Below, piece by piece: positions 23,786-49,162 of a stretch of 64,000 nt of DNA (position 1 is the first letter of the stretch; each line of letters opens with the position of its first letter). The stretch spans positions 124,001-188,000 of the forward strand of contig OZ251247.1 of NCBI GenBank assembly GCA_965240325.2, in the 5' to 3' direction. The stretch is from Rebecca billardiae RCC1528 (lineage: Eukaryota; Protista; Haptophyta). Made by a program: the position numbers and the translations under genes. The notes below the pieces were generated by a model. That model saw only the letters and a list, made by a program, of their open reading frames with translations, did no database searches and was not told the DNA's origin.

Positions 23786-24879
23786 CGAGTCGAGCGCGAG
23801 AGAGGAGGAGGGCTGCCGATGCGTTGAGGTGAGGAACCGGCAGGGGGGTGGACAGGGCAAGGGCACCCGGCCTGTCTGGTACTCTGCTCCGGACTGCGCC
23901 GCCATCGTTACTCGGCGGGCACGGCCCTCCAGTCCTGGCCTGGCTGGCACGTACCCAGCCGCACGCCTTGGCGTCCGGACTCCTGGCCTCCTCCGCCGCC
24001 AAGGGCGGTCCTGGCCACTGTCAGCATCCTGCTGACGCCAGCTGACGACTACGCGCATTGACGACGATATGAACCGCATATCAAGTGCTGCTGCTATATA
24101 CTGTCGTCGCCGTCGCCTGTGACTTATTGTATATAAGGCAGCGAGTCCGGCCGCCGGCGGCGCGGTCATTCTCGCGGTCGCGGATCCGCCGCACTCGGAG
24201 TGGCCACCGCGTGTCCGTGACTCAGCGCGGGCCGTCCCGTGTGAATTCGCCGGCGGCCTACTACGCACCGTTGGTAACACGGGGACGGCGTCGGCGGCAC
24301 GGAGCAGACAGGCCGCCGCCTGAACTGCTCGTCGCCACTGATATGTCTGAATCTGATGAGCCCGGACTCCCGGATCGGACTGTGACGCGACGCCTGCATA
24401 GCCATAGTGCATAATGGCTGCGGCCGTCTGCGGACCGATACCCGCCGTAGGCTGCTCACGGCACGCAATCGGCACTGCGGCCGCGACTCCGGCGGCCGCC
24501 GGGCAACGCTGCTCAGAGTGCACGTACACGCCGCACTGCGCATCGGACTCGGCAGTCCGGACTCGGCGCCTGCAGGCAGGACTCAGCCGCGCGGCGCACG
24601 TGCCGTCGCGCCGGCTAGCCCATCGCCCCCCCTCCCCCCCGCCCCCCGCCGGCAGGGCCCAGGGCGGCACGCGCGGCTTTCGTGCCGCAGCCCTCACCAC
24701 CCGGAGACGCGCGCTGTTGCCCCCTCCGCTGCCCGTGCCGTGCGCACCCGTGCCGCGCCCAGTGCGCCCGGCATGCAGCAGCACCTCCCCTCCTCCCCCC
24801 GCGCACCCCCACACTCCCCGCTGCAGGCAGGCCACAGCGGCTCCGGCTGCCGGCCCTCGCCCCTCGGAGGCAGGCGGCG

Positions 24880-26325
24880 TCAGCAGACGCGCGCACGCCA
24901 CGCCGTCTCGACGCACGTGGGCTTGGCAATCCGCTGGGAGGGCGCGTCTTGCTCGGCCGCGCTCATGCCGAGGCCGAGCGCAGCCGAGCGCTCACCGCAC
25001 GCGTACACGCTGCCGTCCGCACTCACAAACAGCGAGTGGGAGTTGCCTATGGCGCAGCGCACCACACGAGCTTGGGCGAGCGCACCCACTCGTGCGGGGG
25101 TCTTGGAAGCCGCTTTCCCGCGCCGCCCGAGCTGGCCGTACCAGTTGCACCCGAACGTGTGCACGCTGCCGTCCGCGCCCACCACCGCGCTGCTGCCCCA
25201 ACCAGCGCACGCGCGCACGATGCGCACACCGGCGAGGGCGTCAAGCCGCCTCGGCGTGGGCTGCTTGTGCGTGTCTCCGTGCCCCAGTCTGCCATCCCCG
25301 CCGTGCCCAAACGAGTACACCGCCCCGTCGCTGTCCACCACCAGGCTGTGCTCCCTGCCCGCGCTCACGCGCACGGCGCGCACGCCCGCGAGCGCCTCGA
25401 TGCGCCTCGGCGTGCGCTGAGCCTGCCTGTCGCCGTGACCGTGACGGCCACGGCTACCGTCGCCGCACGAGTAGACGGCGCAATGCGCAGACAGGAACAG
25501 CGTGTGAGCACCACCTGCAGCCACCCCGCCCACGCGCACGCCGTCCAGCGCCTCGATGCGCGTCGGCTCCCACCGCTCCTTCGTGTCGCCGTGGCCGAGC
25601 TGGCCGCAGTGGTTGAGGCCCCAGCTGTACGCGCACCCAGCGGCGGTGAGCGCGAGGCTGTACTGATTGCCCGCCGCGATGCCGACGATGAGCTCGCTCG
25701 CGGGTAGCATGACGCGTGCGAACGACCGCCACTCCTCCGTGTCCCCCAGCCCGAGCTGGCCGTACTGGTTGTTGCCGCAGCCGTACACGGCGCCGGCGTC
25801 GCTCAGCGCGAGCAGGTGGTCCAACCCAGCCGCCACAGCGACCACGCGCACCGCGCTGAGGGAGGCGACGCGCGTCGGTACGCGCACTGCATGCATGCCC
25901 GGGTGGCTGATTGCCGCGTGCGCTCGATACGCGCAGCCGTCCTCGTCCAGCTCCTCGCCGCACGTGTGCAGCCCGCCCTCCGCGTCCACAAACGCGCTGA
26001 AGAAACGGCCGGCGGCCACGGGAGGCGAGTGCGCGCGTGCGAGCTCGAGCACGCGTTCACGCGCGAAGAGCTCCTCCGCCCAGCTGCGCACGCCCGCCGG
26101 CAGCGACGCCGGCAGCGCGCGCGCGTGCCCCCGCGCGCGCGCGCGCTCGCGCAGCGCGCGCTCGACCGCCGAGCACCCGCCGGGCGGCGCGACGTGGAAG
26201 AGGCGCGCGGTGGCGTTCAGGCTGGCGAGGTCGGGCGACAGCAAGCATACGATGATGCGGGCGAGCACTTCCGGGGGCAGGTCGTCAAGCGCGAGGGGCG
26301 GCGTGCGCGTCCGTGCCGTGGCCAT
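24880..26325 (-). CDS. F-box + RCC1-repeat protein FR11
   Basis: Start at 26325; F-box and RCC1 repeats. Confidence 0.9.
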   Translation of the reverse strand: MATARTRTPPLALDDLPPEVLARIIVCLLSPDLASLNATARLFHVAPPGGCSAVERALRERARARGHARALPASLPAGVRSWAEELFARERVLELARAHSPPVAAGRFFSAFVDAEGGLHTCGEELDEDGCAYRAHAAISHPGMHAVRVPTRVASLSAVRVVAVAAGLDHLLALSDAGAVYGCGNNQYGQLGLGDTEEWRSFARVMLPASELIVGIAAGNQYSLALTAAGCAYSWGLNHCGQLGHGDTKERWEPTRIEALDGVRVGGVAAGGAHTLFLSAHCAVYSCGDGSRGRHGHGDRQAQRTPRRIEALAGVRAVRVSAGREHSLVVDSDGAVYSFGHGGDGRLGHGDTHKQPTPRRLDALAGVRIVRACAGWGSSAVVGADGSVHTFGCNWYGQLGRRGKAASKTPARVGALAQARVVRCAIGNSHSLFVSADGSVYACGERSAALGLGMSAAEQDAPSQRIAKPTCVETAWRARVC

Positions 26326-27223
26326 CGAGCCGAGCGCGAGACGACGAGAGGCCGAGCGGAGAGCGGTGCGCTGCGGAGGACAGGGCCTGGCCAGTCCGAC
26401 AGTGGCAAACCGTCTCCAAGTCACAGCGAGGGTGCTGACGAGCTGCGTCAGCTCCTGGCCACTGTCAGCAAGGTGAAGGTTGGTACTGTCACTTGTCAGT
26501 TCCTGCTGACGCCGGCTGACTACGCGCATTGATGCCGCGCATATCACTGCTACTGCGCTCGTCTGCGACTTGTGAGCAGTGTCCGGCGCAGTTGATCACT
26601 GGCGGGCCGGTCGTGAACACCGTTGGTAACACGGGGACGGCGTCCGCGGCAGAGCAGACCGGCCGCGCCTCGGAGTCGTCACCACTCGGAGTCTCAGTCT
26701 GAGTCAGCACTAGCAGTGACGCGAGACGACCCGGATGATGAATGACGCCTGCATATAATAGTGCATGGCTGGCTCTGGCCGACACCAGCTCGGCTGCTCA
26801 CGGCACGCAGTCGGCACTGCGGCCGCGACTCCGACGGCCGCCGGGCAGCGCTGCTCAGAGTGCACGTACACGCCGCACTGCGCATCGGACTCGGCAGTCC
26901 GGACTCGGCGCCTGCAGGCAGGACTCAGCCGCGCGGCGCACGTGCCGTCGCGCCGGCTAGACCCCCGCCACCCCCTTCCCCCCGCCCCCCGCCGGCCGGG
27001 CCCAGGGCGGCACGCGCGGCTGTCGTGCCGCAGCCCTCACCACCCGGAGACGCGCGCTGTTGCCCCCTCCGCTGCCCGTGCCGTGCGCACCCGTGCCGCG
27101 CCCAGTGCGCCCGGCGTGCAGCGGCACCCCCCCTCCTCCCCCCGCGCACCCCCACACTCCCCGCTGCAGGCAGGCCCGCAGCGGCTCCGGCTGCCGGCCC
27201 TCGCCCCTCGGAGGCAGGCGGCG

Positions 27224-28675
27224 TCAGCAGACGCGCGCACGCCACGCCGTCTCGACGCACGTTGGCGTGTCAATCCGCTGGGACCCGTGTCGCTCGGCCG
27301 CGCTCATGCCGAGGCCGAGCGCAGCCGAGCGCTCACCGCACGCGTACACGCTGCCGTCCGCACGCACAAACAGCGAGTGGGCGACGCCCATGGCACAGTG
27401 CTCCACGCGGGCTTGGGCGAGGGCATCCAGTCGTTTGGGGGTCTTGGGAGCCGCTTTCACGCGCCGCCCGAGCTGGCCGTACCAGTTGCGCCCGAACGTG
27501 TGCACGCTGCCGTCCGCGCCCAGCACCGCGCTGCTGCGATCGCCAGCGCACGCGCGCACGGCGCGCACAGCGGCGAGGGCGTCAATCCGCCTCGGCGTGG
27601 GCTGCTTGTGCGCGTCTCCGTGCCCCAGTCTGCCACCCCCGCCGTGCCCGAACGAGTACACCGCCCCGTCGCTGTCCACGACCAGGCTGTGCTCCCAGCC
27701 CGCGCTCACGTGCACGGCGCGCACGCCCGCAAGCGCCTCGATGCGCCTCGGCGTGTGCTGATCCTGCCAGTCGCCGTGGCCGAGCGAGCAGCCGTAACCG
27801 CACGAGTAGACGGCGCCGTGGGCAGAGAGCAGCAGCGTGTGCTCACGGCCCGCGGCCACGCCGCCCACGCGCACGCCGTCCAGCGCCTCGATGCGCGTCG
27901 GCTCCCACCGGTCCTCCGTGTCGCCGTGGCCGAGCTGGCCGGAGTGGTTGCGGCCCCAGCTGTACGCACAGCCAGCGGCGGTGAGCGCGAGGCTGTGGGC
28001 AGAGCCCGCGGCAATGCCCACCACCACGACGCCAGCGAGCGCCACGATCGGCTCAAACTCGCGCCGCCCCTCCGCGTCCCCCAGCCCCAGCTGGCCCCAC
28101 CAGTTGTCGCCGCAGCCGTACACGGCGCCGGCGTCGCTCAGCGCGAGCAGGTGGCCGCTGGCAGCGGCCACCGCGACCACGCGCACCGCACTGAGGGAGG
28201 CGACGCGCGTGGGCGCACGCACTGCCGGCGCATCGTGGTGGCCGGTTGCCTCGTGTGCTCGATACTCGCGCGTCAGACGTCGGAGCTCGTCCCGCACCTC
28301 CTCCTCGCCGCACGTGTGCAGCCCGCCCTCCGCGTCCACAAACGCGCTGAAGTCAAAGCCGCACGCGACAGGGGATGCGTGCGCGCGTGCGAGCTTGTGA
28401 AGGCGCTCGCGCAGGAACAGCGCCTCTGCCCACGTGCGCACGCCCGAGGGCAGCGCCGCCAGCAGCGCGCGCTCGTGCCCCCGCGCGCGTGCACGCTCGC
28501 GCAGCGCGCGCTCGACCGCCGAGCGCCCGCCGGGCGGCGCGGAGTGGAAGACGCGCGCGATGGCGTTCAGGCTGGCGAGATCGCGCAGCCGCAGGAGTGA
28601 CGTGATGCGGTCGAGCACCTCTGACGGCAGGTCGTCGAACCCGGGGCGCGGTGCGTGCGTCCGTGCCGTGGCCAT
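27224..28675 (-). CDS. F-box + RCC1-repeat protein FR12
   Basis: Start at 28675; F-box and RCC1 repeats; small in-frame deletions. Confidence 0.9.
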   Translation of the reverse strand: MATARTHAPRPGFDDLPSEVLDRITSLLRLRDLASLNAIARVFHSAPPGGRSAVERALRERARARGHERALLAALPSGVRTWAEALFLRERLHKLARAHASPVACGFDFSAFVDAEGGLHTCGEEEVRDELRRLTREYRAHEATGHHDAPAVRAPTRVASLSAVRVVAVAAASGHLLALSDAGAVYGCGDNWWGQLGLGDAEGRREFEPIVALAGVVVVGIAAGSAHSLALTAAGCAYSWGRNHSGQLGHGDTEDRWEPTRIEALDGVRVGGVAAGREHTLLLSAHGAVYSCGYGCSLGHGDWQDQHTPRRIEALAGVRAVHVSAGWEHSLVVDSDGAVYSFGHGGGGRLGHGDAHKQPTPRRIDALAAVRAVRACAGDRSSAVLGADGSVHTFGRNWYGQLGRRVKAAPKTPKRLDALAQARVEHCAMGVAHSLFVRADGSVYACGERSAALGLGMSAAERHGSQRIDTPTCVETAWRARVC

Positions 28676-29221
28676 CGAGTCGAGCGCGAGAGAGGAGGAG
28701 GGCTGCTGAGGTGGACAGGGCAAGACAGGGCACCCGGCCCGCGGCGCGGCGCCCCCCCCCGCTGCTGCGCTGGTCGTCTGATGATTCCCATCACACTTCA
28801 CACGGGAAGAAAGATTCGAACGAAAGATTCCCCTGGCCGGCCCGGCTGCCACTGCCCTTCTCGCCTGAGCTGTGTGCGTCCAGGGCCAGGCCCAGGCCGG
28901 CAGCCGTTTGAGACTAGGTGCGCCCTCCGCAGGCACAGTACGGACTAGTACGGACTATGGGTGCTGCCACTCGAGCCAGCGGTCCTGACGGCTTACCCAG
29001 TGACCGATATTCGCAGTGCCCGCCGCCGGCTGCCGGCCGTGCTCGCGGCACGCAGTCAGCGCTGCTGCCGCAACGCCGACGGCCGCCAAGCAGCTGCTCA
29101 GAGTGCGCACATGCCGCATGGCGCCCCGGGCTCGGCACCCGTGCCGCGCCCACGGCCACTGCCCCCACAGCTCCACACGCCCTTCTCAGTCCCCCACCCG
29201 CCTGCCCCCTGCTCCTGCCCC

Positions 29222-31122
29222 TCAGAGGTTGAAGGCCACGGATGCGCCCAGGTTGCGCAGCGTGGAGTGGCTCTCGTTGAGCTGCGCCTTCACGTGCAGC
29301 CCCACCGAGCGGGAGAGCTGCGCACACAGCAGCAGCAGCAGCACCACCGCACACACACAGCAAGAGAGAGAGAGTCCGGGGGTTGTGAGAGGGTCCGGGA
29401 GGGGGTAGGGAGGTGGGGATGCACGGGGGGCGGAGGGCGGTGGTGAGGCTGGGCGCACGGCTGCTGCCTCGGTGGTGCACTGACGGCTGCGCGGCCCCAG
29501 CCCGGGAGTGCTTCGGCAGATGTGAGATGTGACCCGCGCGCCACCCCGCGCGCACCTTAAGCGAGTAGAGCATGTTGACGACGCCGTGCCGCTCCGCCGC
29601 CACCTTGAGCGCGTGCGGCCCCGCGGAGAGCGTGCCGCCCAGCAGCAGCCGCTCCACCACGTCCGACTGGCACCCACCGGCAGCGGGGGCAGCGGGGGGG
29701 CAGCAGCCGGGGGGCGGCAGCAGGGGGGCGGCAGCAGCAGGGGGGCAGCAGCAGGGGGGCAGCAGCCGGGGGGCAGCAGCAGGGGGGCAGGGGGGTGGCA
29801 GCAGCAGCACACCGCGGCAGGGGCACACCGGCCAGCCGGGCGGGGAGGGAGGGAGGGGGGTGAGTGCCGTGTGTGGGCGGGCAGCCGTGGGGTGGGCAGA
29901 CGGCGATGTAGGCCGTGGGCGGCGGGCGGTGGGCGGGGCGGGCAGCCGGTGGCGGCGGGGCGGCGGCCGCGCGGGCCGCGCCGCCACCGCCTGCGCTGGG
30001 CGCGCGCGCGGCACGCGCGCGCAGCAGCCGGCTTGCGGGCACGCGCCCGGGGCAGCCCCCAAGCCCACCGCCCCCACGCCCACCCCCACGCCCACACGCA
30101 CGCCCGCACCTGCACGTTGTACGCCACGGACCCCCCCAGCGACAGTCCGGGCCTGAGGCGCACATACAGCGCTGAGCCCACGCGGGAGCCGAGCGTGTTC
30201 GTGCCCAGCGCCATCGCCAGGCGGCCAGAGCGGCAGCTGCGGGGCGGGGGTTGGGGGCGTGCGTGTGTGGGCGTGGGTGTGTCTGGGCGTGAGTGAGGGG
30301 CGGGCGGCCGTGCGTGCGGAGGGGGCGGGGCGGGGCAGCGGGCGGCCGCGCGCCAGTGCAGCTGCTGCCGCAGCGCAGCAGCGCCGCAGCGCGCGTTGCG
30401 CTCGGGCGTGGGCGGGGCCAGCCACGCGGCCCCACGCGTGTGCGTGTGCTCGGGGGCACGCCCGCCCCACAGACACGCGCCCTCGAGGCACGCGCGGTGC
30501 CGCCACCACCACAGACACACACACACACCCGCGCGCGCACACACGCGCGCACAGCGCGCCGGTCGCTACTGCCCCTCACCGCACTGAGAAGTCGGAGGAG
30601 AAAGGGACGTAGATCGACTCCTCGAGCTCGCGCCGCGCGAGCTCGGCCGCGTCGCGCGTGAGCGAGGTGAGGTGCGTCTGCATGCCCTGCGAGCCGCCAC
30701 CGCGCGGCGGGCGTGCGCGCGCGTGGCGCCGGCGGCGGTCGGCCGGCGCGGCGGCGAGCGGCGCACGCGCGCGCGCGCCGCGCGGCGCGCAGCACATCGG
30801 GCGCGCGCGCGCATCCCCGCGGGCGTGCGCACGCACACACACGCGCGCCCGCGCGCACCCCGAACGCCGCCGCGTGCTGCGCCAGCTCCTCCTCGCGCGC
30901 GTGCAGCCGCTGCGTGAGCGCGCCCTCGCGCCGCTTCAGCTCGTCTGCCTCCGCGGTGCGCGCGGCGAGCTCGGCGCGGACGGCGGCGAGCTCGGCGGTG
31001 CGGGTGGTGAGGGTGGACGGGCCGGACCCCTCGCGCGCCGCGCGCACCGCCGCCTCGTGCTCCGCCTTGGTCACGAGCCCGAGCGCGCGCAGCACGCCGC
31101 GCGGCGGCATCGGCAAGCCCGA

Positions 31123-31154
<32 letters not shown>

Positions 31155-31224
31155 CGTCGGCGGCGTCGGGCGCGGGGGGCGAGGTGGAGCCGCCGGGCGG
31201 GGTCGCGCCGTCCGCGTCCGCCAT
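29222..31224 (-). CDS. Duplicate of the coiled-coil + partial VDAC/Tom40-like beta-barrel gene (5 exons; native promoter lost)
   Basis: Exons match those of 45044-46979 (MADADG..., GMQTHL..., CRSGRLAM..., SDVVER..., LSRSVG...VAFNL*), with GT-AG boundaries retained. Confidence 0.65.
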
Positions 31225-31230
31225 GCCGCG

Positions 31231-31459
31231 ACGCCGGCAGCGCGCGCGCGTGCCCCCGCGCGCGCGCGCGCTCGCGCAGCGCGCGCTCGACCGCCGAGCA
31301 CCCGCCGGGCGGCGCGGCGTGGAAGAGGCGCGCGGTGGCGTTCAGGCTGGTGAGGTCGCGCGGCGGCAGGAGCGAGATGACGCGGTCGAGCACCTCTGAC
31401 GGCAGGTCGACGAGCGCGCGCGTCGGTTGCGCGGCGCCGCCCATCTCGTCGGTGGCCAT
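31231..31459 (-). pseudogene. Truncated F-box gene FR13 (FR1-type 5' end only)
   Basis: Matches FR1 3322-3550 plus its upstream sequence (to about 31508). Breaks after ...HARALPAS and joins out of frame to the MADADG gene copy. Confidence 0.85.
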
Positions 31460-31524
31460 CCCGCCGTTCGCGCTGCTCGCGCCCAGGGCCGATGATTGTG
31501 TGCAATACAGTGACGGTATGTTTG

Positions 31525-33267
31525 ACTCGCGTGAAGCCGGCATAGGTGGGTGCGGCCGCCCGGCGAAGCCGCACGAAGCCGGTGAAGCGGGCGCGCGGTG
31601 GCCACGGTCGCGGCGATCCGCGCAGTCTAGCGGGTGGCGAGGCGACAGTGGGCGCGTCCCAGTCGGTCGCCGACGTGCCGCGCCCTGCCGACCAGCCGCC
31701 TTGACGCGATGGCCCGCCGACCCCCGGCGTCCGCCTGGGCCACGTGCACGCGGCGATTTGAATGAGGCGCGCGCTGCCGGCTGGCAAGGAATTCGACGAG
31801 GGCGAGGACGAGGGTGATGAGGAATGGATGGCCGTAGACACTGTGAGCGCTGGCCTCTCTGCTGACTCCACAGCGCCGCACGCGCACACGTGCAAGCACC
31901 CGTCTGGTGCGCCTCTGCATGGCAGAAGGCGGATCGTCCGTGGTGAAGTGATCCGGAGATCCCTGGCGTTGAGTCGCCCCCTTCGGCGGAGGCAAGTTGG
32001 CGATGAGTGTGTGCCGACCCGTGCTTCGCCGCGGACCCGTCCGCGTGTGGCCCCGCGACGTGCGGTCTCGCTGCGCCCCCGCCCAGCATTGCTTGGTGCA
32101 GGGCTACCTGGCCGCACACTCGTCAGCAACAGGCTGACGCGGCGACCTGCGGCTCCAAATGGCAGCAGCGGCGGGGTGCTGGTGGAAGAGCGCCATGCCT
32201 TACATAGCCACGGTGTGCGGTCGGCAGGTGCCATCGCCAGTGACCGCCGAGCGGCGACGGCTGAGCTGAGCTGCATGGCGACTGCGGAGCCCGCCGAGCG
32301 TCGAGCCGCGCGCCGCGCCCGGTCGCCCGAATCGGCGGAGGGCAATCGCGTGGACGGAGTCGGCAGCCTCAGGCAGCCTGCTCGGTTGGTCCGCTCACCC
32401 CGCTGCCGCCAGCAAGGAGACTATGCGCTTAGGCTACCGCACATGAGACAGTATACGTATGATCGTCGCCGTGCGGTGAATCTCTGGCTGCCCGCGCGCG
32501 CAGCGGTCCGCATGCACGGTGGGTGGGCTGATCTGTGATCATCAAGGTCACAGATTCCGCCCGCCGATGTTGCTCAATGGCGGCTGACCGTGGGGGTGAC
32601 TGTGGAGCTGGGGGTGGGAGGTGGGGCATGACGCTCTCCTACTCTTGCCGCAAGGTCCCTCGCGGTCGTCCCGCGCAGCGATTCCCGCACTCGCCCCTCG
32701 CCGTCATCACGCGCCCTCAGCGGCGCGCCGCTGCGCGGCGGCGCGCCCAACCCAGCCGGGCGGGGCACGCGCTCGCGTTTGCTCCCACCTCGCCCTCGAG
32801 ACGAGCGCGGGCGGCGGGGCTCCTCCTCCTCCTCCTCTTCCTCCTCCTCTTGCGCGCGCCGGCGCCGGCGGGGCGGCTCCTCCTCCTCCTCCTCCTCCTC
32901 CTCATCCTCGCCGGCGCCGCGGCCGCCGGCAGCGGCGGCGCCGCTGGCGCCGCCGCTGGAGAGGGGCCGCCGAGGGCCAAGAGGGGCGGGAGGGGCGGCA
33001 AGGAGCGCGGCCTGGAATGACCTGCGCGAGCACGGGTGTCGCCGTCGCCGATGGCGACGGCTGTCGCCGGCTGTCGCCGATGGCGACGGCGCCGGCGCGA
33101 ATGGCAGCACGGACGGTCGCGGGCGCGTCGTCCATGCTGGCTTCAGCGCGGCTTCAGCCCGCTTCAGCGGGCTTCAGCGGGCGTGAAGCCGCGCTGAAGG
33201 CTCACTGCGCGTCGCTTCAACATTGTGCTGTATTGTTGCCCCAAACCGTATCTGGCTTCACCCTCTA
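31525..33267. mobile_element. Putative degenerate hAT-like non-autonomous element carrying an acidic low-complexity ORF fragment
   Basis: GAAGC(C) motifs cluster at 31531-31590 and inverted GCTTCA motifs at 33140-33180. The right end CTGGCTTCACCCTCTA reads TAGAGGGTG on the - strand. A poly-Glu ORF lies at 32574-33110. The left TIR is only partly recognisable. Confidence 0.35.
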
Positions 33268-33339
33268 CTAGTAATAGAACGTATACAGTCAGGTTGGTTG
33301 TCGAGCGAGGTCGGGTCCGGTAACGAGTCTAGTTGCTGA

Positions 33340-33660
33340 CTCCGATACCATGTTCAATGTTAGACTGAAGAAGAAGCGTGGGTGCTCCCTACCGCGCGTG
33401 TGGGCGATACGGGTCCACCGGAAGCGACCAGGCGGGGCTAGGACCACCCCGAAGGGGCGAGGCGGACGGTGTCACATCATCGGATGATGGGTCCGAGGCA
33501 GCCCCAAACTCCCAGGGAGTTTGGGGCTCCGCCGGACTGGCCGAGAAAGTGCCGGATCGTGCCTCCGCCGGTACGTACGGGGTCGGGTAGATGCGGCGGA
33601 AACTTACCCGCGACTCCTGTGGAACGGTGTCTCCGAGGACTGGTGCCCAGACTGACAACA
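33340..33660 (-). mobile_element. 5' LTR (310 bp, 33351-33660) plus primer-binding site of a truncated LTR retrotransposon, probably Ty1/copia
   Basis: On the - strand TGTTGTCAGT...ACATTGAACA is immediately followed by TGGTATCGGAG, close to the canonical tRNA-iMet PBS TGGTATCAGAG. No second LTR or pol seen. Confidence 0.75.
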
Positions 33661-35122
33661 CGCACCAGCTGACACGAGCACGCCACGCCGCCTCGACGCA
33701 CGTGGGCGTGGCAATCCGCTGGGTGGGCTCGTCTTGCTCGGCCGCGCTCATGCCGAGGCCGAGCGCAGCCGAGCGCTCACCGCACGCGTACACGCTGCCG
33801 TCCGCACTCACAAAGAGCGAGTGGAAGTCGCCCATGGCACAGCGCACCACGCGCGCTTGGGCGAGCGCGCCAGCACGCGCGGGCAGCGACCATTCGCCAG
33901 CGCCATCTTGCCCTAGCTGGCCGTACGCGTTGTCCCCAAACGTGTGCACGCTGCCGTCTGCGCCCAGCACCGCGCTGCTGAGTACGCCAGCGCGCGCGTG
34001 CACGATGCGCACAGCGGCGAGGGCGTCAAGCCGCCTCGGCGTGCGCTGCTCGTGCGTGTCGCCGTGCCCCAGCCTGCCCTCCCCGCCGTGCCCAAACGAG
34101 TATACCGCCCCCTCGCTGTCCACCACCAGGCTGTGCCAGCGACCCGCGCTCACGTGCACGGCGCGCACGCCCGCGAGCGCCTCGATGCGCCTCGGCGTGT
34201 GCTGAACCTGCTTGTCGCCGTTGCCCAGCGTGCCGTGGTCGCCATTGCCACACGAGTAGACGGCACCGCGCGCAGATAGGAACAGCGTGTGAGCATACGC
34301 ACCGGCCACTCCGGCAACGCGCACGCCGCCCAGCGCCTCGATGCGCGTCGGCTCCCACCGGTCCTTCGTGTCGCCGTGGCCGAGCTGGCCGTCTAAGTTG
34401 CGGCCCCAGCTGTATGCGCAGCCCGCGGCGGTGAGCGCCAGGCTGTGGTCGTTGCCGGCCGAGATGCCCACGACCACGGCGTCGGCCAGCGCAACGACCG
34501 GAGCGAACGAGAACCGCATCTCCTTGTCGCCCAGCCCGAGATGGCCGTGGTCGTTGTAGCCGCAGCCGTACACGGCGCCGGCATCGCTCAGCGCGAGCAG
34601 GTGGCCATACCCAGCGGCCACCGCGACCACGCGCACTGCGCTGACGGAGGCGACGCGCGTCGGCACGCACACTTCCAGCACGCCCGACTGGCCAGTAGCC
34701 ACGTGTGCTCGATACTTAACCCTCGGCCCGTCCTCGTCCCACCCCAGCTGCTCGCCGCACGTGTGCAGCCCGCCCTCCGCGTCCACAAACGCGCTGAAGT
34801 CCTGGCCGGCCGCAACCGAGGATGCGTGCGCGCATGCGAGCTCGAGGACACCCTCGCGCACGAACAGCTCCTCTGTCCACGTGCGCACGCCCGAGGGCAG
34901 CGCCGCCGGCAGCGTGCGCTCGTGCCCACGCGCGCGCGCGCGCTCGCGCAGCGCGCGCTCGACTGGCGAGCACCCGCCGGGCGGCGCGGCGTGGAGGAGG
35001 CGCGCGGTGGCGTTCAGGCTGGCGAGGTCGCGCGGCGGCAGGAGTGAGAGGATGCGGTCAAGCACCTCTGACGGCAGGTCGTCGAGCGCGAGGGGCGGCG
35101 TGCGCGTCCGTGCCGTGGCCAT
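33389..35122 (-). CDS. F-box + RCC1-repeat protein FR14 with an LTR-derived C-terminal extension
   Basis: 577-aa ORF. The normal stop TGA has become TGG, and about 90 codons are read from the adjacent LTR. Confidence 0.85.
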   Translation of the reverse strand: MATARTRTPPLALDDLPSEVLDRILSLLPPRDLASLNATARLLHAAPPGGCSPVERALRERARARGHERTLPAALPSGVRTWTEELFVREGVLELACAHASSVAAGQDFSAFVDAEGGLHTCGEQLGWDEDGPRVKYRAHVATGQSGVLEVCVPTRVASVSAVRVVAVAAGYGHLLALSDAGAVYGCGYNDHGHLGLGDKEMRFSFAPVVALADAVVVGISAGNDHSLALTAAGCAYSWGRNLDGQLGHGDTKDRWEPTRIEALGGVRVAGVAGAYAHTLFLSARGAVYSCGNGDHGTLGNGDKQVQHTPRRIEALAGVRAVHVSAGRWHSLVVDSEGAVYSFGHGGEGRLGHGDTHEQRTPRRLDALAAVRIVHARAGVLSSAVLGADGSVHTFGDNAYGQLGQDGAGEWSLPARAGALAQARVVRCAMGDFHSLFVSADGSVYACGERSAALGLGMSAAEQDEPTQRIATPTCVEAAWRARVSWCVLSVWAPVLGDTVPQESRVSFRRIYPTPYVPAEARSGTFSASPAEPQTPWEFGAASDPSSDDVTPSASPLRGGPSPAWSLPVDPYRPHAR

Positions 35123-36019
35123 CGAGCCGAGCGCGAGAGAAGACGAGGGGAAGGGCCGAGCGGAGGCGTGCGCTGCGGAGGACAGAGCCTGGACAGTCCG
35201 ACAGTGGCAAACCGTCTCCAGTCACAGCGAGGGTGCTGAGCTGCGTCAGCTCCTGGCCACTGCCAGCAAGGTGAAGGTTGGTACTGTCACTTGTCAGTTC
35301 CTGCTGACGCCGGCTGACTACGCGCATTGATGCCGCATGTCACTGCTACTGCGCTCGTCTGCGACTTGTGAGCAGTGTCCGGCGCAGTTGATCACTGGCG
35401 GGCCGGTCGTGAACACCGTTGGTAACACGGGGACGGCGTCCGCGGCAGAGCAGACCGGCCGCGCCTGAGTCGTCACCACTGCATGACTGAGTCAGCACTA
35501 GCCGACTAGGCCTAGCAGTGACGCGAGACGACCCGGATGATGAATGACGCCTGCATAGTGCATGGCTGGCTCTGGCCGACACCAGCTCGGCTGCTCACGG
35601 CACGCAGTCGGCACTGCGGCCGCGACTCCGACGGCCGCCGGACAGCGCTGCTCAGAGTGCACGTACACGCCGCACTGCGCATCGGACCCGGCAGTCCGGA
35701 CTCGGCGCCTGCAGGCAGGACTCAGCCGCGCGGCGCACGTGCCGTCGCGCCGGCTAGCCCACCGCCCCCCCTCCCACCCGCCCCCCGCCGGCAGGGCCCA
35801 GGGCGGCACGCGCGGCTGTCGTGCCGCAGCCCTCACCACCCGGAGACGCGCGCTGTTGCCCCCTCCGCGGCCAGTGCCGTGCGCACCCGTGCCGCGCCCA
35901 TTGCGCCCGGCGTGCAGCGGCACCCCCCCTCCTCCCCCCGCGCACCCCCACACTCCCCGCTGCAGGCAGGCCCGCAGCGGCTCCGGCTGCCGGCCCTCGC
36001 CCCTCGGATGCAGGCGGCG

Positions 36020-37465
36020 TCAGCAGACGCGCGCACGCCACGCCGTCTCGACGCACGCGGGCGTGTCGATCCGCTGGGCGGGCGCGTCTTGCTCGGCCTC
36101 GCTCATGCCGAGGCCGAGCGCAGCCGAGCGCTTGCCGCACGCGTACACGCTGCCGTCCGCACTCACAAACAGCGAGTGGGCGCCGCCTATGGCGCAGCGC
36201 ACCACACGAGCTTGGGCGAGCGCACCCACTCGTGCGGGGGTCTTGGAAGCCGCTTCCCCGCGCCACCCGAGCTGGCCGTACCAGTTGCGCCCGAACGTGT
36301 GCACGCTGCCGTCCGCGCCCAGCACCGCGCTGCTGCGATCGCCAGCGCACGCGCGCACGGCGCGCACAGCGGCGAGGGCGTCAATCCGCCTCGGCGTGGG
36401 CTGCTTGTGCGCGTCTCCGTGCCCCAGTCTGCCACCCCCGCCGTGCCCGAACGAGTACACCGCCCCGTCGCTGTCCACGACCAGGCTGTGCTCCCAGCCC
36501 GCGCTCACGTGCACGGCGCGCACGCCCGCAAGCGCCTCGATGCGCCTCGGCGTGTGCTGATCCTGCCAGTCGCCGTGGCCGAGCTTGCCAGAGGAGCCAT
36601 CGCCGCACGAGTACACGGCGCCGTGTGCAGAGAGCATTAGCGTGTAAGAGAACCCAGCTGCCAGCCCGCCCACGCGCACGCCGTCCAGCGCCTCGATGCG
36701 CGTCGGCTCCCACCGCTCCTCCGTGTCGCCGTGGCCGAGCTGGCCGTTGCAGTTGTCGCCCCAGCTGTACGCGCACCCGGCGGCGGTGAGCGCGAGGCTG
36801 TGGGACCCGCCAGCGGCGATGCCGACGATGAGCTCGCTCGCGGGTAGCATGACGCGTGCGAACGACCGCCGCTCCTCCGTGTCCCCCAGCCCCAGCTCGC
36901 CGCACCAGTTGTCGCCGCAGCCGTACACGGCGCCGGCCTCGCTCAGCGCGAGCAGGTGGCCAATGCCAGCGGCCACGGAGCACACGCGCACCGCGCTGAG
37001 GGAGGCGACGTGCGTCGGCACGCGCGCCACCTGCATGCCCGAATGGCCAACAGCCATGTGCGCTTGATACAGCCAGCCGTCCTCGTCCAGCTCCTCGCCG
37101 CACGTGTGCAGCCCGCCCTCCGCGTCCACAAACGCGCTGAAGCCACCGCCGGCGGCCACGGGAGGCGAGTGCGCGCGTGCGAGCTCGAGCACGCGTTCGC
37201 GCAGGAACAGCTCACCGACCCACGTGCGCACGCCCGCGGGCAGCGACGCGGGCAGCGCGCGCTCGTGCCCACGCGCTCGCGCGCGCTCGCGCAGCGCGTG
37301 CTCGACCGGCGAGCACCCGCCGGGCGGCGCGGCGTGGAAGAGGCGCGCGGTGGCGTTCAGGCTGGCGAGGTCACGCGACGGCAGGGGTAAGATGATGCGG
37401 TCGAGCACCTCTGACGGCAGGCCGTTGAGCGCGGGGCGCGGGGCGTGCGTCCGTGCCGTGGCCAT
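36020..37465 (-). CDS. F-box + RCC1-repeat protein FR15 (clear mosaic)
   Basis: Start at 37465; F-box and RCC1 repeats. Confidence 0.9.
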   Translation of the reverse strand: MATARTHAPRPALNGLPSEVLDRIILPLPSRDLASLNATARLFHAAPPGGCSPVEHALRERARARGHERALPASLPAGVRTWVGELFLRERVLELARAHSPPVAAGGGFSAFVDAEGGLHTCGEELDEDGWLYQAHMAVGHSGMQVARVPTHVASLSAVRVCSVAAGIGHLLALSEAGAVYGCGDNWCGELGLGDTEERRSFARVMLPASELIVGIAAGGSHSLALTAAGCAYSWGDNCNGQLGHGDTEERWEPTRIEALDGVRVGGLAAGFSYTLMLSAHGAVYSCGDGSSGKLGHGDWQDQHTPRRIEALAGVRAVHVSAGWEHSLVVDSDGAVYSFGHGGGGRLGHGDAHKQPTPRRIDALAAVRAVRACAGDRSSAVLGADGSVHTFGRNWYGQLGWRGEAASKTPARVGALAQARVVRCAIGGAHSLFVSADGSVYACGKRSAALGLGMSEAEQDAPAQRIDTPACVETAWRARVC

Positions 37466-37582
37466 CGAGCCGAGCGCGCGAGAAGACGAGGGGAAGGGCC
37501 GAGCGGAGGCGTGCGCTGCGGAGGGCGTCCGACAGTGGCAAACCGTCTCCACTCCAAGTGAAAGTCACAGCGAGGGTGCTGA

Positions 37583-38606
37583 GGGTCGTTCTTCCGAGCC
37601 CCCGCAAGCTCGCCCAGACGGGTATCTGTCCTGAAGCATTTGTCTAGGGTGGCTTACAAAAATGTTCGGGCTCAAAACGAGGGGCCGCGGGCGTTCTTGC
37701 GAGCATTTCCTTTCCGTTTTGGAGTTGCGCCGGTAGCTATTGAGATTGCGGGAGGATCGGCACCTGCTCGCCCAAGGGAGCCTAGGAGAAGCTCAGCGAG
37801 GGCAGCCCGCGACCCTAGCGTCCCTGTCGTGCACGTGCAGGCCCTTCTCGTGCGCATGATGTCGGCGAGGGGCGGCAGTCAGAGCGCCAACGCACACTTG
37901 ATCTGCAAAGAGAAGCTCGTGTGTGCAATGTAGGCAACCAGGTGTCCCACCGACCGACCGCGCAAGCGGGCGCCGACAGCCGAGCACGGTGGAGCTGGTC
38001 GCGTGTGCGCAGACAGCTAAGCGAGATGATATGAGGAGATTGTGGGCATGCCACGGTCGAGCCCTGCTCGTAAGTGTCTTCTGGAGACACGCACGACCGT
38101 GTGCATCGTGGCTGAGTCGAAATCTTCTACGAATTCAAACGCTCCGGGCGCAAGGCGCGACGAGTGCATTCTGCGCACGTCAGATCACACAACGGAGGCT
38201 TGCGCCGCACAAGCTGCGCTCAAGCACGCGAGCGCAGCCAGGCGTCACACGTGACTGGCCAGCCTCAACACCACCGCCGCCGAGCATACGAGCGCGCGCG
38301 CGAACGCGCCGGTCGTACTTGTCTCCGCCGACCGCCGCACGCACGCACGGCATGCTCTCGACCCTCTCGTGGGCCGATGTTGGAAGTCACAGAAGCTTCC
38401 GTCCTGCGATCTTTCGGGACGAGATAGTATGTGACGAAATTTGGCCGGGACCAAGTGTTGTTTGGATTTCCAACAACACTTGGTCCCGGCCAAGTTTCGT
38501 CATCATGGGGAGGCCTCCACGCCCCCGCGTTCGCAATAGGTCCTCATACAACAATGTTCGGGCTCGGGCTGGGGAAAAAGCGTGGGGGGGCTCGGAAGAA
38601 CGACCC
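37583..38606. mobile_element. PIF/Harbinger-type (Tourist-like) MITE, 1024 bp
   Basis: 21-bp perfect TIRs GGGTCGTTCTTCCGAGCCCCC, with a 3-bp TSD TGA at 37580-37582 and 38607-38609. Interrupts the conserved spacer. Confidence 0.85.
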
Positions 38607-39389
38607 TGAGCCAAGGGTAGTACCCTTGGCTGAGTGCGTCAGCTCCTGGCCACTGGCATCAGCAACTGAGCAAGGTTGGTACTGTCACTTATGTCAGTTC
38701 CTGCTGACGCCGGCTGACTACGCGCATTGATGCCGCAGCATATCACTGCTACTGCGCTCGTCTGCGACTTGTGAGCAGAGTGTCCGGCGCAGTTGATCAC
38801 TCTCAGGCGGGCCGGTCGTGAACACCGTTGGTGAACACGGGAACGGCGTCAGCGGCAGAGCAGACCGGCCGCGCCTGAGTCGCCACTGCTGAGACGACCC
38901 GGATGATGAATGACGCCTGCATAGTGCATGGCTGCTGGCTCTGGCCGACACCAGCTCGGCTGCTCACTGCACGCAGTCGGCACTGCGGCCGCGACTCCGA
39001 CGGCCGCCGGGCAGCGCTGCTCAGAGTGCACGCGTACACGCCGCACTGCGCATCGGACTCGGCAGTCCGGACTCGGCGCCTGCAGGCAGGACTCAGCCGC
39101 GCGGCGCACGTGCCGTCGCGCCGGCTAGACCCCCGCCCCCCCCTTCCCCCCGCCCCCCGCCGGCCGGGCCCAGGGCGGCACGCGCGGCTGCAGTGCCGCA
39201 GCCCTCACCGCCCGGAGACGCGCGCTGTTGCCCCCTCCGCGGCCAGTGCCGTGCGCACCCGTGCCGCGCCCAGTGCGCCCGGCGTGCAGCGGCACCTCCC
39301 CTCCTCCCCCCGCACCCCCACACTCCCCGCTGCAGGCAGGCGCGCAGCGGCTCCGGCTGCCGGCCCTCGCCCCTCGGAGGCAGGCGGCG

Positions 39390-40838
39390 TCAGCAGACGC
39401 GCGCACGCCACGCCATCTCGACGCACGTGGGCTTGGCAATCGACGAGCGCTCGGCCAAGCTCATGCCGAGGCCGAGCGCAGCCGAGCGCTTGCCGCACGC
39501 GTACACGCTGCCGTCCGCACTCACAAACAGCGAGTGGGCATCGCCCATGGCACAGTGCACCACGCGAGCTTGGGCGAGGACGCCCCGTCGTGTGCGGGTA
39601 TTGGGAGCTGCTTTCCTGCGCCGCCCGAGCGGGCCGTGCCCGTTGTCCCCGAACGTGTGCACGCTGCCGTCCGCGCCCACCACCGCGCTGCTGCCAGAGC
39701 CGGCGCACGCGCGCACGGCGCGCACACCCGCGATGGTGTCAATCCGCCTCGGTGTGGGCTGCGTGTGCGTGTCTCCGTGCCCCAGCCTGCCATCCGCGCC
39801 GTGCCCAAACGAGTACACCACCCCGTTGCTGTCCACCACCAGGCTGTGCATATAGCCCGCGCTCACGTGCACGGCGCGCACGCCCGCGAGCGCCTCGATG
39901 CGCCTCGGCGTGAGCTGATCCTCCTCACCGCCGTGGCCGAGCTGGCCCATGTAGCCATGGCCGCACGAGTAGACGGCGCCGTGCGCCGAGAGCAGTAGCG
40001 TGTGGAATGCGCCCGCGGCGACGCCGCCCACGCGCACGCCGTCCAGCGCCTCGATGCGCGTCGGCTCCCACCGGTCCTCCTTGTCGCCGTGGCCGAGCTG
40101 GCCGTCCCCGTTCCAGCCCCAGCTGTACGCGCACCCAACGGCGCTGAGCGCGAGGCTGTGGTAGGTGCCAGCGGCGATGCCCACCACCACGACGCCAGCG
40201 AGCGCCACGATCGGCTCAAGCTCGCGCCGCTCCTCCGCGTCCCCCAGCCCCAGCTGGCCCCTGCTGTTGTGGCCGCAGCCGTACACGGCGCCGGCCTCGC
40301 TCAGCGCGAGCAGGTGCTCGCCGGCGGCCACCGCAGCTACGCGCACCGCGCTGAGGGAGGTGACGCGCGTCGGCACGCGCACTGCCGGCGCATCGCGGTG
40401 GCCGGTTGCCGCTCGCGCAATATACTCGCCCGTCAGTCGCCTGGTGTCCTCGTCCTCCGCCTTCTCCTCGCCGCACGTGTGCAGCCCGCCCTCCGCGTCC
40501 ACAAACGCGCTGAACTCAGCGCCTGCCGAGACCGGGGATGCGTGCGCGCGTGCGAGCTTGTGAAGGCACTCGCGCAGGAACAGCTCCTCTGCCCACGTGC
40601 GCACGCCCGAGGGCAGCGCCGCCGGCAGCGCGCGCTCGTGCCCCCGCGCGCGTGCACGCTCGCGCAGCGCGCGCTCGACCGCCGAGCGCCCGCCGGGCGG
40701 CGCGGCGTGGAAGACGCGCGCGGTGGCGTTCAGGCTGGCGAGATCGCGCAGCCGCAGGAGTGACGTGATGCGGTCGAGCACCTCTGACGGCAGGTCGTCG
40801 AACCCGGGGCGCGGTGCGTGCGTCCGTGCCGTGGCCAT
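39390..40838 (-). CDS. F-box + RCC1-repeat protein FR16
   Basis: Start at 40838; F-box and RCC1 repeats; short in-frame deletions. Confidence 0.9.
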   Translation of the reverse strand: MATARTHAPRPGFDDLPSEVLDRITSLLRLRDLASLNATARVFHAAPPGGRSAVERALRERARARGHERALPAALPSGVRTWAEELFLRECLHKLARAHASPVSAGAEFSAFVDAEGGLHTCGEEKAEDEDTRRLTGEYIARAATGHRDAPAVRVPTRVTSLSAVRVAAVAAGEHLLALSEAGAVYGCGHNSRGQLGLGDAEERRELEPIVALAGVVVVGIAAGTYHSLALSAVGCAYSWGWNGDGQLGHGDKEDRWEPTRIEALDGVRVGGVAAGAFHTLLLSAHGAVYSCGHGYMGQLGHGGEEDQLTPRRIEALAGVRAVHVSAGYMHSLVVDSNGVVYSFGHGADGRLGHGDTHTQPTPRRIDTIAGVRAVRACAGSGSSAVVGADGSVHTFGDNGHGPLGRRRKAAPNTRTRRGVLAQARVVHCAMGDAHSLFVSADGSVYACGKRSAALGLGMSLAERSSIAKPTCVEMAWRARVC

Positions 40839-40916
40839 CGAGTCGAGCGCGAGAGAGGAGGAGGGCTGATGAGTTGAGGTGAGGAACCGGCAGGGGTGGA
40901 CAGGGCAAGACAGGGC

Positions 40917-41600
40917 CAGGGATGGCACAAGCGATTCGCCGAATTGCCAAATGCCAGCCAATTCGCCGAATTCGCCGATTCGCGAGAACGCTGGGCGCGT
41001 TCGGCGAAAGTGATGGCGAAAATAATGCCCGCCCGATCCGGGCGGTACCACTCGAGACCCCTCATTGGGAACGGATAACTCGACGGGTGGGCGCGGGCAA
41101 AGGTGGCTCGATGGCCGCATCCCGACGCATGGACGTGTTCTCCTCGTCGTGCTCGACACGGCAATACCGGTCTCGCCGCCGCCGGATGTCCCGTTGGAGA
41201 GCGCCGTGCGCTTGACGGAGGGCAGGTTTTGCAGGTGTCCGCCAGTGCTGACCCCTCATTGGGAACGCTCGCGCACGCGCGCGCACTGTGAGCACCACTG
41301 CGGCCGACAGTGTTGCACAGGTTTGAGGAGCGGTTCACTGCGTGGGACCGCTCGAGGTGAGGGCATGGGCAATGGGGGGTGTAGAACTCTTCCCAAATGC
41401 GAGATGTGGGCATGCCTCTGCATCTCGCAACGCAGTGGTGTCACCCGGCGCGCGCTTGCCCTTGGTACGGCACGCGGATGAAGCGGTCGGCTGCATCGTC
41501 GTGCTCGTGTTTGACACGTGAGATCGCGCTGCTCTCCAGACGACGTCGGTGCAGTCTTCAACCCACTGACTTGACTATGGCATCGCCGCTGGTTGGCGCC
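40917..41600. mobile_element. Truncated hAT-like element end upstream of FR16 (right boundary uncertain)
   Basis: Begins CAGGGATGGCA (Ac-like terminus) where spacer homology stops. ATTCGCCGA subterminal repeats at 40934-40978 and an 18-bp direct repeat at 41056/41250. Opposite TIR not found. Confidence 0.5.
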
Positions 41601-42233
41601 CAGCGCCGTCTGATGAGAGCCCCCAAATCCGAGTATCATTACCGCAAGTGCTGCCGTATTAGTCTGCTGCTTCGGATACTGCTCGCCTGTAGTGACTTGT
41701 GAGCAGCGTCCGGCGCGCGGTTTCAGATCATAGGCGGGCCGGCCGTGAACGCCTACTACCGTTGGTAACACGGGGACGGCGTCCGCGGCACGGAGCAGAC
41801 AGGCCGCGCCGCCTGAACTCGTCGCCACTGATGATGCGCGCTGTCATCTGAATCTGATGATGAGCCCGGACCCGCGGAATCACCCGGTGACGACCCGGAT
41901 GACTATGCTGCTAGTCGGACGACGCCTGCATATAGTCGGCATAATGGCGGCTATGCGCGGCTTATCTTATGGCCGATAACCCGCTAGGCTGCTCACGGCA
42001 CGCAATCGGCACTGCGGCCGCGACTCCGACGGCCGCCGGGCAGCGCTGCTCAGAGTGCACGCGTACACGCCGCACTGCGCCCCGGACTCGGCAGTCCGGA
42101 CTCCGCGCCTGCAGGCAGGACTCAGCCGGCCAGCCCCCGTCCCCTCCGGCCCCGCGCACCTCGACACTCCCCGCCTCAGGCAGGCCCGCAGCGGCTCCGG
42201 CTGCCTGCCCTCGCCCCTCGGAGGCAGGCGGCG

Positions 42234-43697
42234 TCAGCAGACGCGCGCACGCCACGCCGTCTCGACGCACGCGGGCGTGTCAGTACGCCGGGTGGGCTCG
42301 TCTTGCTCGGCCGCGCTCATGCCGAGGCCGAGCGCAGCCGAGCGCTTGCCGCACGCGTGCACGCTGCCGTCCGCACTCACAAACAGCGAGTGGGAGTCGC
42401 CCATGGCACAGTGCACTGCGCGATCTTGGGCAAGGGCAGGCGCTCGCGTGGGCGCTTTGACGTCCGCCTCTCCGTGCCCCAGCCCGAGCTGGCCGTCCTC
42501 GTTGCACCCGAACGTGTGCACGCTGCCGTCCGCGCCCAGCACCGCGCTGCTGCCCAGACCAGCGCACGCGCGCACGGCGCGCACACCAGCGAGCGCCTTG
42601 ACGCGCTTGGGCTTGCGCCGACCGACAGTGTCGCCGTGCCCGAGATTGCCTCCCGATTCACATCCAAACGAGTGCACCGCCCCCTCGGCGTCCGCCACCA
42701 GGCTGTGCGCGTAGCCCGCGCTCACGTGCACGGCGCGCACGCCCGCGAGCGCCTCGATGCGCCTCGGCGTGTGCTGAGACTGCCGGTCGCCGTGGCCGAG
42801 CTGGCCCACGTAGCCATGGCCGCACGAGTAGACGGCGCCGTGCGCCGAGAGCAGTAGCGTGTGGAATGCGCCCGCGGCGACGCCGCCCACGCGCACGCCG
42901 TCCAGCGCCTCGATGCGCGTCGGCTCCCGCCGCTTCTTCGTGTCGCCGTGGCCGAGCTGGCCGTCGTCGTTGAAGCCCCAGCTGTACGCACACCCAGCGG
43001 CGGTGAGCGCGAGGCTGTGGTCGTCGCCAGCGGCGATGCCCACCACCACGACGCCAGCGAGCGCCACGATCGGCTCAAACTCGCGCCGCTCCTCCGCGTC
43101 CCCCAGCCCGAGCTGGCCGTACCTGTTGTTGCCGCAGCCGTACACAGCGCCGGCCTCGCTCAGCGCGAGCAGGTGGCAGCTGCCAGCGGCCACCGCGACC
43201 ACCCGCACCGCACTGAGGGAGGCGACGCGCGTCGGCACGCGCACTGCCGGCGCATCGTGGTGGCCGGCTGCAAAGTGCGCTCGATACTCGCCCGTCAGAC
43301 GTCGGAGCTCGTCCCGCACCTCCTCCTCGCCGCACGTGTGCAGCCCGCCCTCCGCGTCCACAAACGCGCTGAAGTCAAAGCCGCACGCGACAGGGGATGC
43401 GTGCGCGCGTGCGAGCTTGTGAAGGCGCTCGCGCAGGAACAGCGCCTCTGCCCACGTGCGCACGCCCGAGGGCAGCGCCGCCAGCAGCGCGCGCTCGTGC
43501 CCCCGCGCGCGTGCACGCTCGCGCAGCGCGCGCTCGACCGCCGAGCGCCCGCCGGGCGGCGCGGCGTGGAAGACGCGCGCGGTGGCGTTCAGGCTGGCGA
43601 GATCACGCAGCCGCAGGAGTGACGTGATGCGGTCGAGCACCTCTGACGGCAGGTCGTCGAACCCGGGGCGCGGTGCGTGCGTCCGTGCCGTGGCCAT
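42234..43697 (-). CDS. F-box + RCC1-repeat protein FR17
   Basis: 487-aa ORF; N-terminal third nearly identical to FR12. Confidence 0.9.
   Translation of the reverse strand: MATARTHAPRPGFDDLPSEVLDRITSLLRLRDLASLNATARVFHAAPPGGRSAVERALRERARARGHERALLAALPSGVRTWAEALFLRERLHKLARAHASPVACGFDFSAFVDAEGGLHTCGEEEVRDELRRLTGEYRAHFAAGHHDAPAVRVPTRVASLSAVRVVAVAAGSCHLLALSEAGAVYGCGNNRYGQLGLGDAEERREFEPIVALAGVVVVGIAAGDDHSLALTAAGCAYSWGFNDDGQLGHGDTKKRREPTRIEALDGVRVGGVAAGAFHTLLLSAHGAVYSCGHGYVGQLGHGDRQSQHTPRRIEALAGVRAVHVSAGYAHSLVADAEGAVHSFGCESGGNLGHGDTVGRRKPKRVKALAGVRAVRACAGLGSSAVLGADGSVHTFGCNEDGQLGLGHGEADVKAPTRAPALAQDRAVHCAMGDSHSLFVSADGSVHACGKRSAALGLGMSAAEQDEPTRRTDTPACVETAWRARVC

Positions 43698-49129: not shown

Positions 49130-49162
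<33 letters not shown>

Follow-up and report, generated by a model that had tools for sequence, protein, structure and literature searches.

Introduction

In plants, clusters of nucleotide-binding leucine-rich repeat (NLR) genes such as the 'type I' RGC2 genes of lettuce hold chimeric paralogs that arise by frequent sequence exchange. The F-box families of nematodes, of plants and of the S-locus evolve rapidly, by lineage-specific tandem expansion with positive selection in the substrate-binding domain. Here we describe a gene array that can be compared with both, in a 64,000-nt stretch of DNA from the haptophyte Rebecca billardiae RCC1528 (GenBank assembly GCA_965240325.2, contig OZ251247.1, positions 124,001 to 188,000, forward strand; hereafter the window, whose own coordinates are used throughout). 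Its genes, named within the series FR1 to FR19, encode an F-box-like N-terminus followed by a seven-blade RCC1 propeller, and we concentrate on FR15, a mosaic of segments that it shares with different paralogs. As in the NLR clusters, the genes are full-length, receptor-like, arranged in tandem and chimeric with one another, and a repeat-domain surface carries hypervariable, solvent-exposed residues; unlike NLRs, which combine leucine-rich repeats with an NB-ARC domain, they combine the propeller with an F-box-like head, and an immune role is putative. As in the F-box expansions, putative substrate receptors of SCF (Skp1-Cullin-F-box) complexes have multiplied in tandem, but the role of binding domain falls to an RCC1 propeller, and the F-box match lies below the Pfam cutoff in FR15 and FR18, the window genes that were inspected singly for it.

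That tandem duplicates undergo interlocus gene conversion, and stay divergent where divergence is favoured by selection, is well documented (PMC3924837, PMC3966223). In such families, among them the major histocompatibility complex (MHC) and resistance-gene clusters, short tracts pass between paralogs on the same chromosome, trees conflict along the gene, and conversion homogenises copies and makes new combinations while regions under diversifying selection stay divergent. The same holds for the present locus, which unlike the reviewed families is an F-box-like/RCC1 propeller array. The var genes of Plasmodium falciparum form in-frame mosaics when full-length paralogs undergo mitotic ectopic recombination (PMC4270465, PMC6532940). 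There as here all partners are complete, the frame and the domain architecture are kept and chimeras result; new var chimeras have, however, been seen directly in clonal lines, whereas here we see a historical footprint only, and the products of this one local tandem array are probably intracellular adaptors rather than surface antigens. The variable lymphocyte receptors (VLRs) of lampreys and the variant surface glycoprotein (VSG) and pilin cassettes likewise diversify a repeat-protein binding surface by segment copying. They do so somatically, with an incomplete or single expressed gene and many silent partial cassettes, and neither of these architectural features is present in the window.

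Results

FR15 is assembled from segments shared with different paralogs

FR15 is a minus-strand open reading frame (ORF) at 36020..37465 that encodes 481 residues, as given in the initial annotation of the window. Its whole-gene identities to its paralogs are 80-89%. When an alignment of 483 codons is followed in 90-nt windows, the best partner of FR15 changes from FR19/FR9 to FR11, FR4, FR6/FR11, FR7, FR12 and finally FR9/FR11, and local identity to this changing partner is 93-100%. The initial annotation had described the genes as patchworks from short peptide blocks held in common. A string search recovered all 17 of the quoted blocks in the genes named for them (HGDWQDQ also occurs in FR7, and AGDRSS in FR6), and the sharing is real at the DNA level, where FR15 contains long exact matches to FR12 and to FR7.

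The match to FR12 (27224..28675, minus strand), found by an exact-repeat scan, is 319 nt long and extends over 36266..36584 (minus strand) in FR15 and 27467-27785 in FR12. It spans 174 sites that are polymorphic in the family (global permutation p < 1/3000) and forms an internal patch that takes in four variable loop clusters, in blades 4 and 5. Identity is 100% inside the tract, against 84% and 87% in its 150-nt flanks, and 83% between the two genes outside it. Silent polymorphic sites follow the same pattern, with no difference at 24 sites inside the tract and 13 differences at 60 sites outside (silent-run p = 0.0008). The exact match to FR7, from the same scan, is 119 nt long (36531..36649, minus strand, in FR15; 14987-15105 in FR7; global p = 0.003) and overlaps the FR12-matching tract by 54 nt.

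Three further segments are near matches. When FR15 is painted under a copying model, an FR4-like segment with the IG variable dipeptide of blade 1 is found at 36938..37070 (minus strand, 9 mismatches in 133 nt), and FR15 and FR4 are 99% identical in the alignment window 451-540. An FR11-like segment at 37076..37198 (minus strand) carries the short ELDEDG variant of an insertion loop and has 3 mismatches in 123 nt to FR11 25936-26058. The C-terminal segment is FR9/FR11-like (36069..36288, minus strand), with 7 mismatches in 220 nt to FR9 20040-20259. FR15 reaches 97% identity to FR11 and FR9 in other 90-nt windows, and a 71-nt exact run is common to the three genes (global p = 0.011).

The 319-nt tract itself is closest to FR11 (92.5%) and FR9 (90.6%) and far from FR17 (82%), and FR11 and FR9 are also the relatives of FR15 on both tract flanks. 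Because the tract is nearest to FR15's own relatives, FR12 is the likely recipient, and the transfer probably went from FR15 to FR12. The wording of the initial annotation on the polarity of this largest tract was therefore probably reversed.

Statistical tests indicate exchange between paralogs

Tests of gene pairs covered 136 pairs, and loop comparisons (below) 17 genes. The pairwise homoplasy index (PHI) on 467 informative sites gave z = -13.7 and -14.3, and none of 2000 permutations was as low (p < 1/2000). In a GENECONV-style permutation of 763 polymorphic sites, 23 pairwise fragments reached global significance (p < 0.05), with FR12=FR15 (319 nt), FR12=FR17 (277 nt), FR5=FR16 (207 nt) and FR9=FR11 (187 nt) at their head; tested pair by pair, 25 of the 136 pairs were significant after Bonferroni correction.

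Maximum-likelihood (ML) trees were built for the N-terminal part and for seven blocks of ~52 codons. FR15 groups with FR11 in block 1 (90% bootstrap), with FR7 in block 4, which is the blade-3/4 block (99%), and with FR12 in block 5 (98%). In an approximately unbiased (AU) test for each block, the data rejected the trees of the seven other blocks as well as that of the whole gene (p <= 0.015, mostly < 1e-4), with log-likelihood differences of 27-273. Congruence of these trees, as the initial annotation had pointed out, would have refuted the idea of mosaics; they exclude one another instead.

For a null, the whole-gene tree was used to simulate 100 alignments in which each site kept its posterior mean rate in place. 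PHI in 30 of these tree-only alignments ranged from z = -0.3 to +4.0, and the longest identical run had a mean of 83 nt and a maximum of 144 nt, against the 319 nt observed. In the copying-model painting, 0.42 of the mismatches to the best single donor remain, versus 0.68 (0.65-0.71) in the null. The number of painted segments is no higher than in the tree-only null (24.4 vs 24.8), so that segment counts are no evidence of exchange and only the drop in mismatches is. The painting agrees with two other patchworks of the initial annotation, FR17 (with parts resembling FR12, FR5/FR10, FR16 and FR2) and FR11 (with parts resembling FR8, FR1, FR6 and FR9).

At 136 silent sites, with fourfold third positions added, PHI was also significant (z = -4.5, p < 2e-4), and silent runs had p < 0.05 in 21 of the 136 pairs vs 6.8 expected. 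As the exchange signal stands at silent sites, convergent selection on the protein cannot be its cause. Altogether, PHI, fragment permutation, the AU-tested block trees, silent sites and the double-switch patches described below uphold the earlier proposal that the paralogs have exchanged sequence through gene conversion or unequal crossover.

Exchange extends to inverted copies and whole repeat units

Other pairs also share exact repeats in the scan, including FR12=FR17 (272 nt), FR5=FR16 (237 nt), FR9=FR11 (187 nt) and FR1=FR11 (146 nt), and the longest exact repeats in the array reach 1267 nt. Several of the shared tracts are internal patches. The FR1-FR11 patch is 100% identical with flanks of 72% and 84%, and the FR8-FR14 patch is 100% identical with flanks of 81% and 75%; with FR12-FR15 and FR7-FR15 included, flank identities are 72-89%, the signature of double switches. 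The inverted copies FR18 and FR19 take part as well: FR12 and FR19 share an 86-nt exact inverted repeat, and in pairwise permutation (among 31 pairs) FR12-FR19 had p = 0.0002 and FR16-FR18 p = 0.001. Non-crossover conversion is needed, because internal patches with diverged flanks and exchange with inverted copies exceed what simple unequal crossover yields.

Two larger events stand out. A 3.1-kb segment with FR5 and both of its spacers (9165..12260, minus strand) is >99.8% identical to 21805-24900, which holds FR10; it arose very recently, by long conversion or by segmental duplication. The two copies lie at a constant offset of 12,639 nt, and the genes adjoining them are just 84-88% alike. 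FR12 and FR17, compared over 28025-31200 and 43047-46965, are 93-100% identical in most 100-nt windows. The part in common is the 5' half of the gene with ~2.4 kb of very GC-rich upstream DNA, in which the 5' half of FR12 and its upstream flank reach 96-100%; over the 3' two-thirds of the genes identity is just 71-88%, a pattern that fits a putative hybrid gene at a duplication junction. At the edge of the FR12/FR17 block, and within the span of the direct array, lies FR13p (31229-31459), a 231-nt 5' gene fragment from the tblastn inventory that is 96% identical to the 5' end of FR1.

Tract ends lack blade register and most loop variants are unique

The most variable positions of the proteins recur every 52 codons, in the motifs A-G-x-x-H and G-x-N/G-x-x-G. 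The x-x dipeptide of A-G-x-x-H aligns with the Trp-Arg of the GWRHT motif of UVR8, which lies on the dimer and partner-binding face of that protein and provides its UV-B chromophore and dimer-interface residues. UVR8 keeps this pair fixed, whereas the equivalent positions are the most variable ones in the proteins of the array. In FR15 the dipeptide occupies residues 326-327 and 378-379, with equivalents in every blade, and one such position has Trp in both FR15 and FR12 (GWEH). The ratio of nonsynonymous to synonymous substitution rates (dN/dS) was 1.54 at codons picked post hoc for variability, a choice that biases it upward, vs 0.34 in the scaffold.

The variable positions form 14 loop clusters, each with 12-17 distinct DNA variants among the 17 genes, and just 1.8% of pairwise loop comparisons are identical. 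Where a variant is shared, the chance that following clusters are shared too falls with distance, from 0.21 to 0.12, 0.04 and 0. Loops move in groups of one to ~five clusters, and most loop diversity in the window is unexplained by copying from neighbours. Because most loop variants are unique, copying within the window cannot be their main source, and the combinatorial reassortment to which the initial annotation attributed loop diversity is not supported in that role.

Its placement of the switches, in the invariant stretches between blades, is not borne out either. The breakpoint intervals of 23 high-confidence switches have a mean of 19.8 nt vs 28.9 nt expected if breakpoints are uniform (p = 0.21); the switch ends show no phase preference within the 156-nt blade period and no enrichment in invariant stretches, and mosaicism extends into the spacers between genes. 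Where a tract ends depends on where the sequences happen to differ and not on the borders of the blades.

Six spacers differ less than the silent sites of their neighbouring genes

Six spacers of ~880 nt (8807-9685, 13705-14475, 19117-19990, 21455-22324, 26326-27223 and 35123-36019) align well and were compared as a pool. Their mean difference is 6.0% (2-10%), vs 15-16% at fourfold third positions of the adjoining genes. The FR14-FR15 spacer (35123..36019) is one of the six and is 97-99% identical to other spacers in 120-nt windows; the remaining spacers of the array are 74-90% alike, in a less reliable alignment. The six well-aligned spacers are mosaic like the coding DNA, but the signal of recombination in them is weaker: PHI gives p = 0.008-0.03, and 36% of the pairs of informative sites are incompatible.

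The spacers gave no sign of being coding. Some long ORFs on the plus strand begin in them, for example at 35537-36640, but these are of low complexity, change frame from one unit to the next and match nothing in Pfam, and they were rejected as genes. The FR15|FR16 spacer holds an insert of ~1 kb (37580-38540) that resembles nothing else in the window and is without a convincing ORF.

The contrast between spacers and coding DNA can be read in more than one way. One reading is that homogenisation runs free in the spacers and is resisted in coding DNA, where loop differences would be lost; others are that the coding DNA mutates faster, or that the spacers are constrained.

The array encodes an apparently lineage-specific propeller family

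The G+C content of the window is ~72%. ORFs, alignment and the tblastn inventory delimit a direct tandem array of 16 full-length paralogs on the minus strand (FR1-FR12 and FR14-FR17, 2036..43697), and two inverted paralogs on the plus strand (57193..60760), FR18 at 57193-58791 and FR19 at 59294-60760. The family thus has 18 full-length, intronless genes in the window, each an uninterrupted ORF of 481-577 codons. Searching the 64 kb by tblastn with all 18 proteins found just these 18 complete genes and the 231-nt fragment, and no partial blade cassettes; the architecture that defines VLR, VSG and pilin systems is therefore absent from the window. The analogy to antigenic-variation cassettes or VLR assembly drawn in the initial annotation is not supported, as there is no library of partial donors and no single incomplete expression gene, and all 18 ORFs are complete.

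The genes of the window match the RCC1 and WD40_RLD families of Pfam at E = 7e-62 to 8e-75. In 19 of 20 family members there is also an F-box-like match at E <= 1, the best at E = 5.4e-6; in FR15 it covers residues 14-45 (E = 0.036) and scores 14.3 bits vs a Pfam cutoff of 24.3. The AlphaFold2 model of FR15 (predicted local distance difference test score, pLDDT, 90.4; predicted template modelling score, pTM, 0.90) has a helical N-terminal domain and seven four-stranded blades. Its best match among solved folds is UVR8 (PDB 4dnw), at a Foldseek template modelling (TM) score of 0.93 normalised to UVR8, E = 1e-39 and ~30% identity, and RCC1-like domains of HERC2 (PDB 3kci), which have the same seven-blade fold, are also among the top solved matches. 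The window genes probably encode substrate adaptors of the SCF type.

The nearest database protein is 53% identical and stands alone on its 5.5-kb contig. No relatives turned up when metagenomes were scanned with the family alignment, and a full-text literature search found no paper on an F-box/RCC1 family in haptophytes. The propeller family is apparently large, hypervariable and lineage-specific.

Individual members vary in length: FR14 (33389-35122) has a C-terminal extension of ~90 residues past the usual family stop, and FR18 carries an insertion of 37 residues between blades 5 and 6. Between the direct array and the inverted copies, the region 46000-54000 has 76-81% G+C, CA/GT-type microsatellites and low-complexity long ORFs on both strands with runs of Gly, Ala and Arg.

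Discussion

The mosaics of FR15 and its paralogs are very probably what ectopic homologous recombination within a tandem array has left behind over evolutionary time. Most of the events are short non-crossover conversion patches (~50-320 nt), such as would be pasted in when a broken copy is repaired from a neighbouring paralog. Occasional long events and unequal crossovers may copy whole units or make hybrid genes, as they might have done in the FR5/FR10 3.1-kb segment and in FR12/FR17. As exchange reaches the whole repeat unit, the spacers and the inverted copies, it reflects generic recombination and not a blade-specific device: this is the ordinary copy-and-paste repair of a tandem family and not a programmed assembly system. 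Conversion would sometimes shift one to ~five neighbouring loop clusters from one receptor to another and so yield new combinations, while selection may remove conversions that erase loop differences and leave the six spacers more homogenised than the silent sites of coding DNA.

Several other origins of the patchworks can be weighed against such repair. The array is repetitive, with exact repeats of more than a kilobase, and an assembler or consensus step could have switched between near-identical paralogs; however, FR15 alone would then require ~ten in-and-out switches, all of them frame-preserving, in an array where 18 of 18 genes are intact ORFs. Mis-joins would also be exact, whereas the tracts are graded in age, as evolution predicts (0 mismatches in 319 nt, 4 in 310 nt, 9 in 133 nt), polishing would not draw the reads of one paralog into a partner region with 17% divergence, and the silent-site signal is spread over many pairs, which leaves assembly or polishing chimeras a very improbable source. 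That no exchange took place is scarcely credible. Convergent selection on a few allowed loop sequences, or uneven rates along the gene, could be invoked because the variable codons look positively selected, albeit at sites chosen post hoc, and because two-residue loop variants can recur by chance. Such recurrence does not account for long continuous identity that includes silent and scaffold sites, as in the FR12/FR15 tract, or for a PHI signal that is significant at silent sites alone, and simulations on a single tree with the real landscape of site rates never approach the observed statistics.

Other rivals accept exchange and differ in how it comes about. Unequal crossing-over during array growth, with hybrid genes left at duplication junctions, would by itself produce the divergence inside the gene that follows the shared 5' half and upstream DNA of FR12 and FR17, and the truncated FR13p lies at such a boundary. 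Each single crossover nevertheless contributes one switch per event, and the internal patches and the exchange that involves FR18 and FR19 need non-crossover conversion, so that crossing-over with no gene conversion at all seems most unlikely. A programmed or high-rate somatic process like that of VLRs, trypanosome VSGs or pilin cassettes, which would make the patchworks during the life of a clone, finds some encouragement in the very recent events implied by the zero-difference 319-nt tract and the >99.8% identical 3.1-kb segment, and in the resemblance of the family to a recognition repertoire. Against it stand the tblastn inventory, which lacks both a partial-cassette library and a single incomplete recipient, the spread of exchange beyond the variable parts into spacers, tract ends without register or preferred site, and loop variants that are for the most part unique and for which window copying cannot be the main source; we give this process very little credence.

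Some observations weigh against the favoured reading, or limit it. PHI on 40 informative silent sites in codons of invariant residues was not significant (p = 0.15-0.28), and the silent-site signal emerged only with the larger set. The junctions are known from the assembly sequence alone, and proof of donor direction or of non-reciprocity would require an outgroup or population data. Selection against homogenisation predicts higher silent divergence near the variable codons, but silent divergence does not change systematically away from them (Spearman -0.09, p = 0.26), in a test that is weak as the loops are just 50-100 nt apart, and the idea that selection resists homogenisation is for that reason without direct support. 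Going further, one might see the array as a self-diversifying receptor repertoire, in which recombination, possibly mitotic and var-like, makes new F-box/RCC1 combinations in clonal populations and selection holds the coding DNA apart while some spacers nearly homogenise; we regard this as speculative and rather unlikely.

Mosaicism is no proof of an immune-like function or of a programmed mechanism. It has practical consequences all the same: because every block rejects the whole-gene tree, gene trees and dN/dS of this family need estimates for each segment, and copy-specific primers and read mapping should steer clear of the shared tracts. Whether diversity is actively maintained can be tested through the difference between the homogenised spacers and the divergent coding DNA. 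For the organism, these results describe a hypervariable algal propeller family that changes by point changes in its surface loops together with copy-and-paste between neighbouring genes, the same evolutionary toolkit as that of MHC genes, plant resistance genes and parasite antigen genes.

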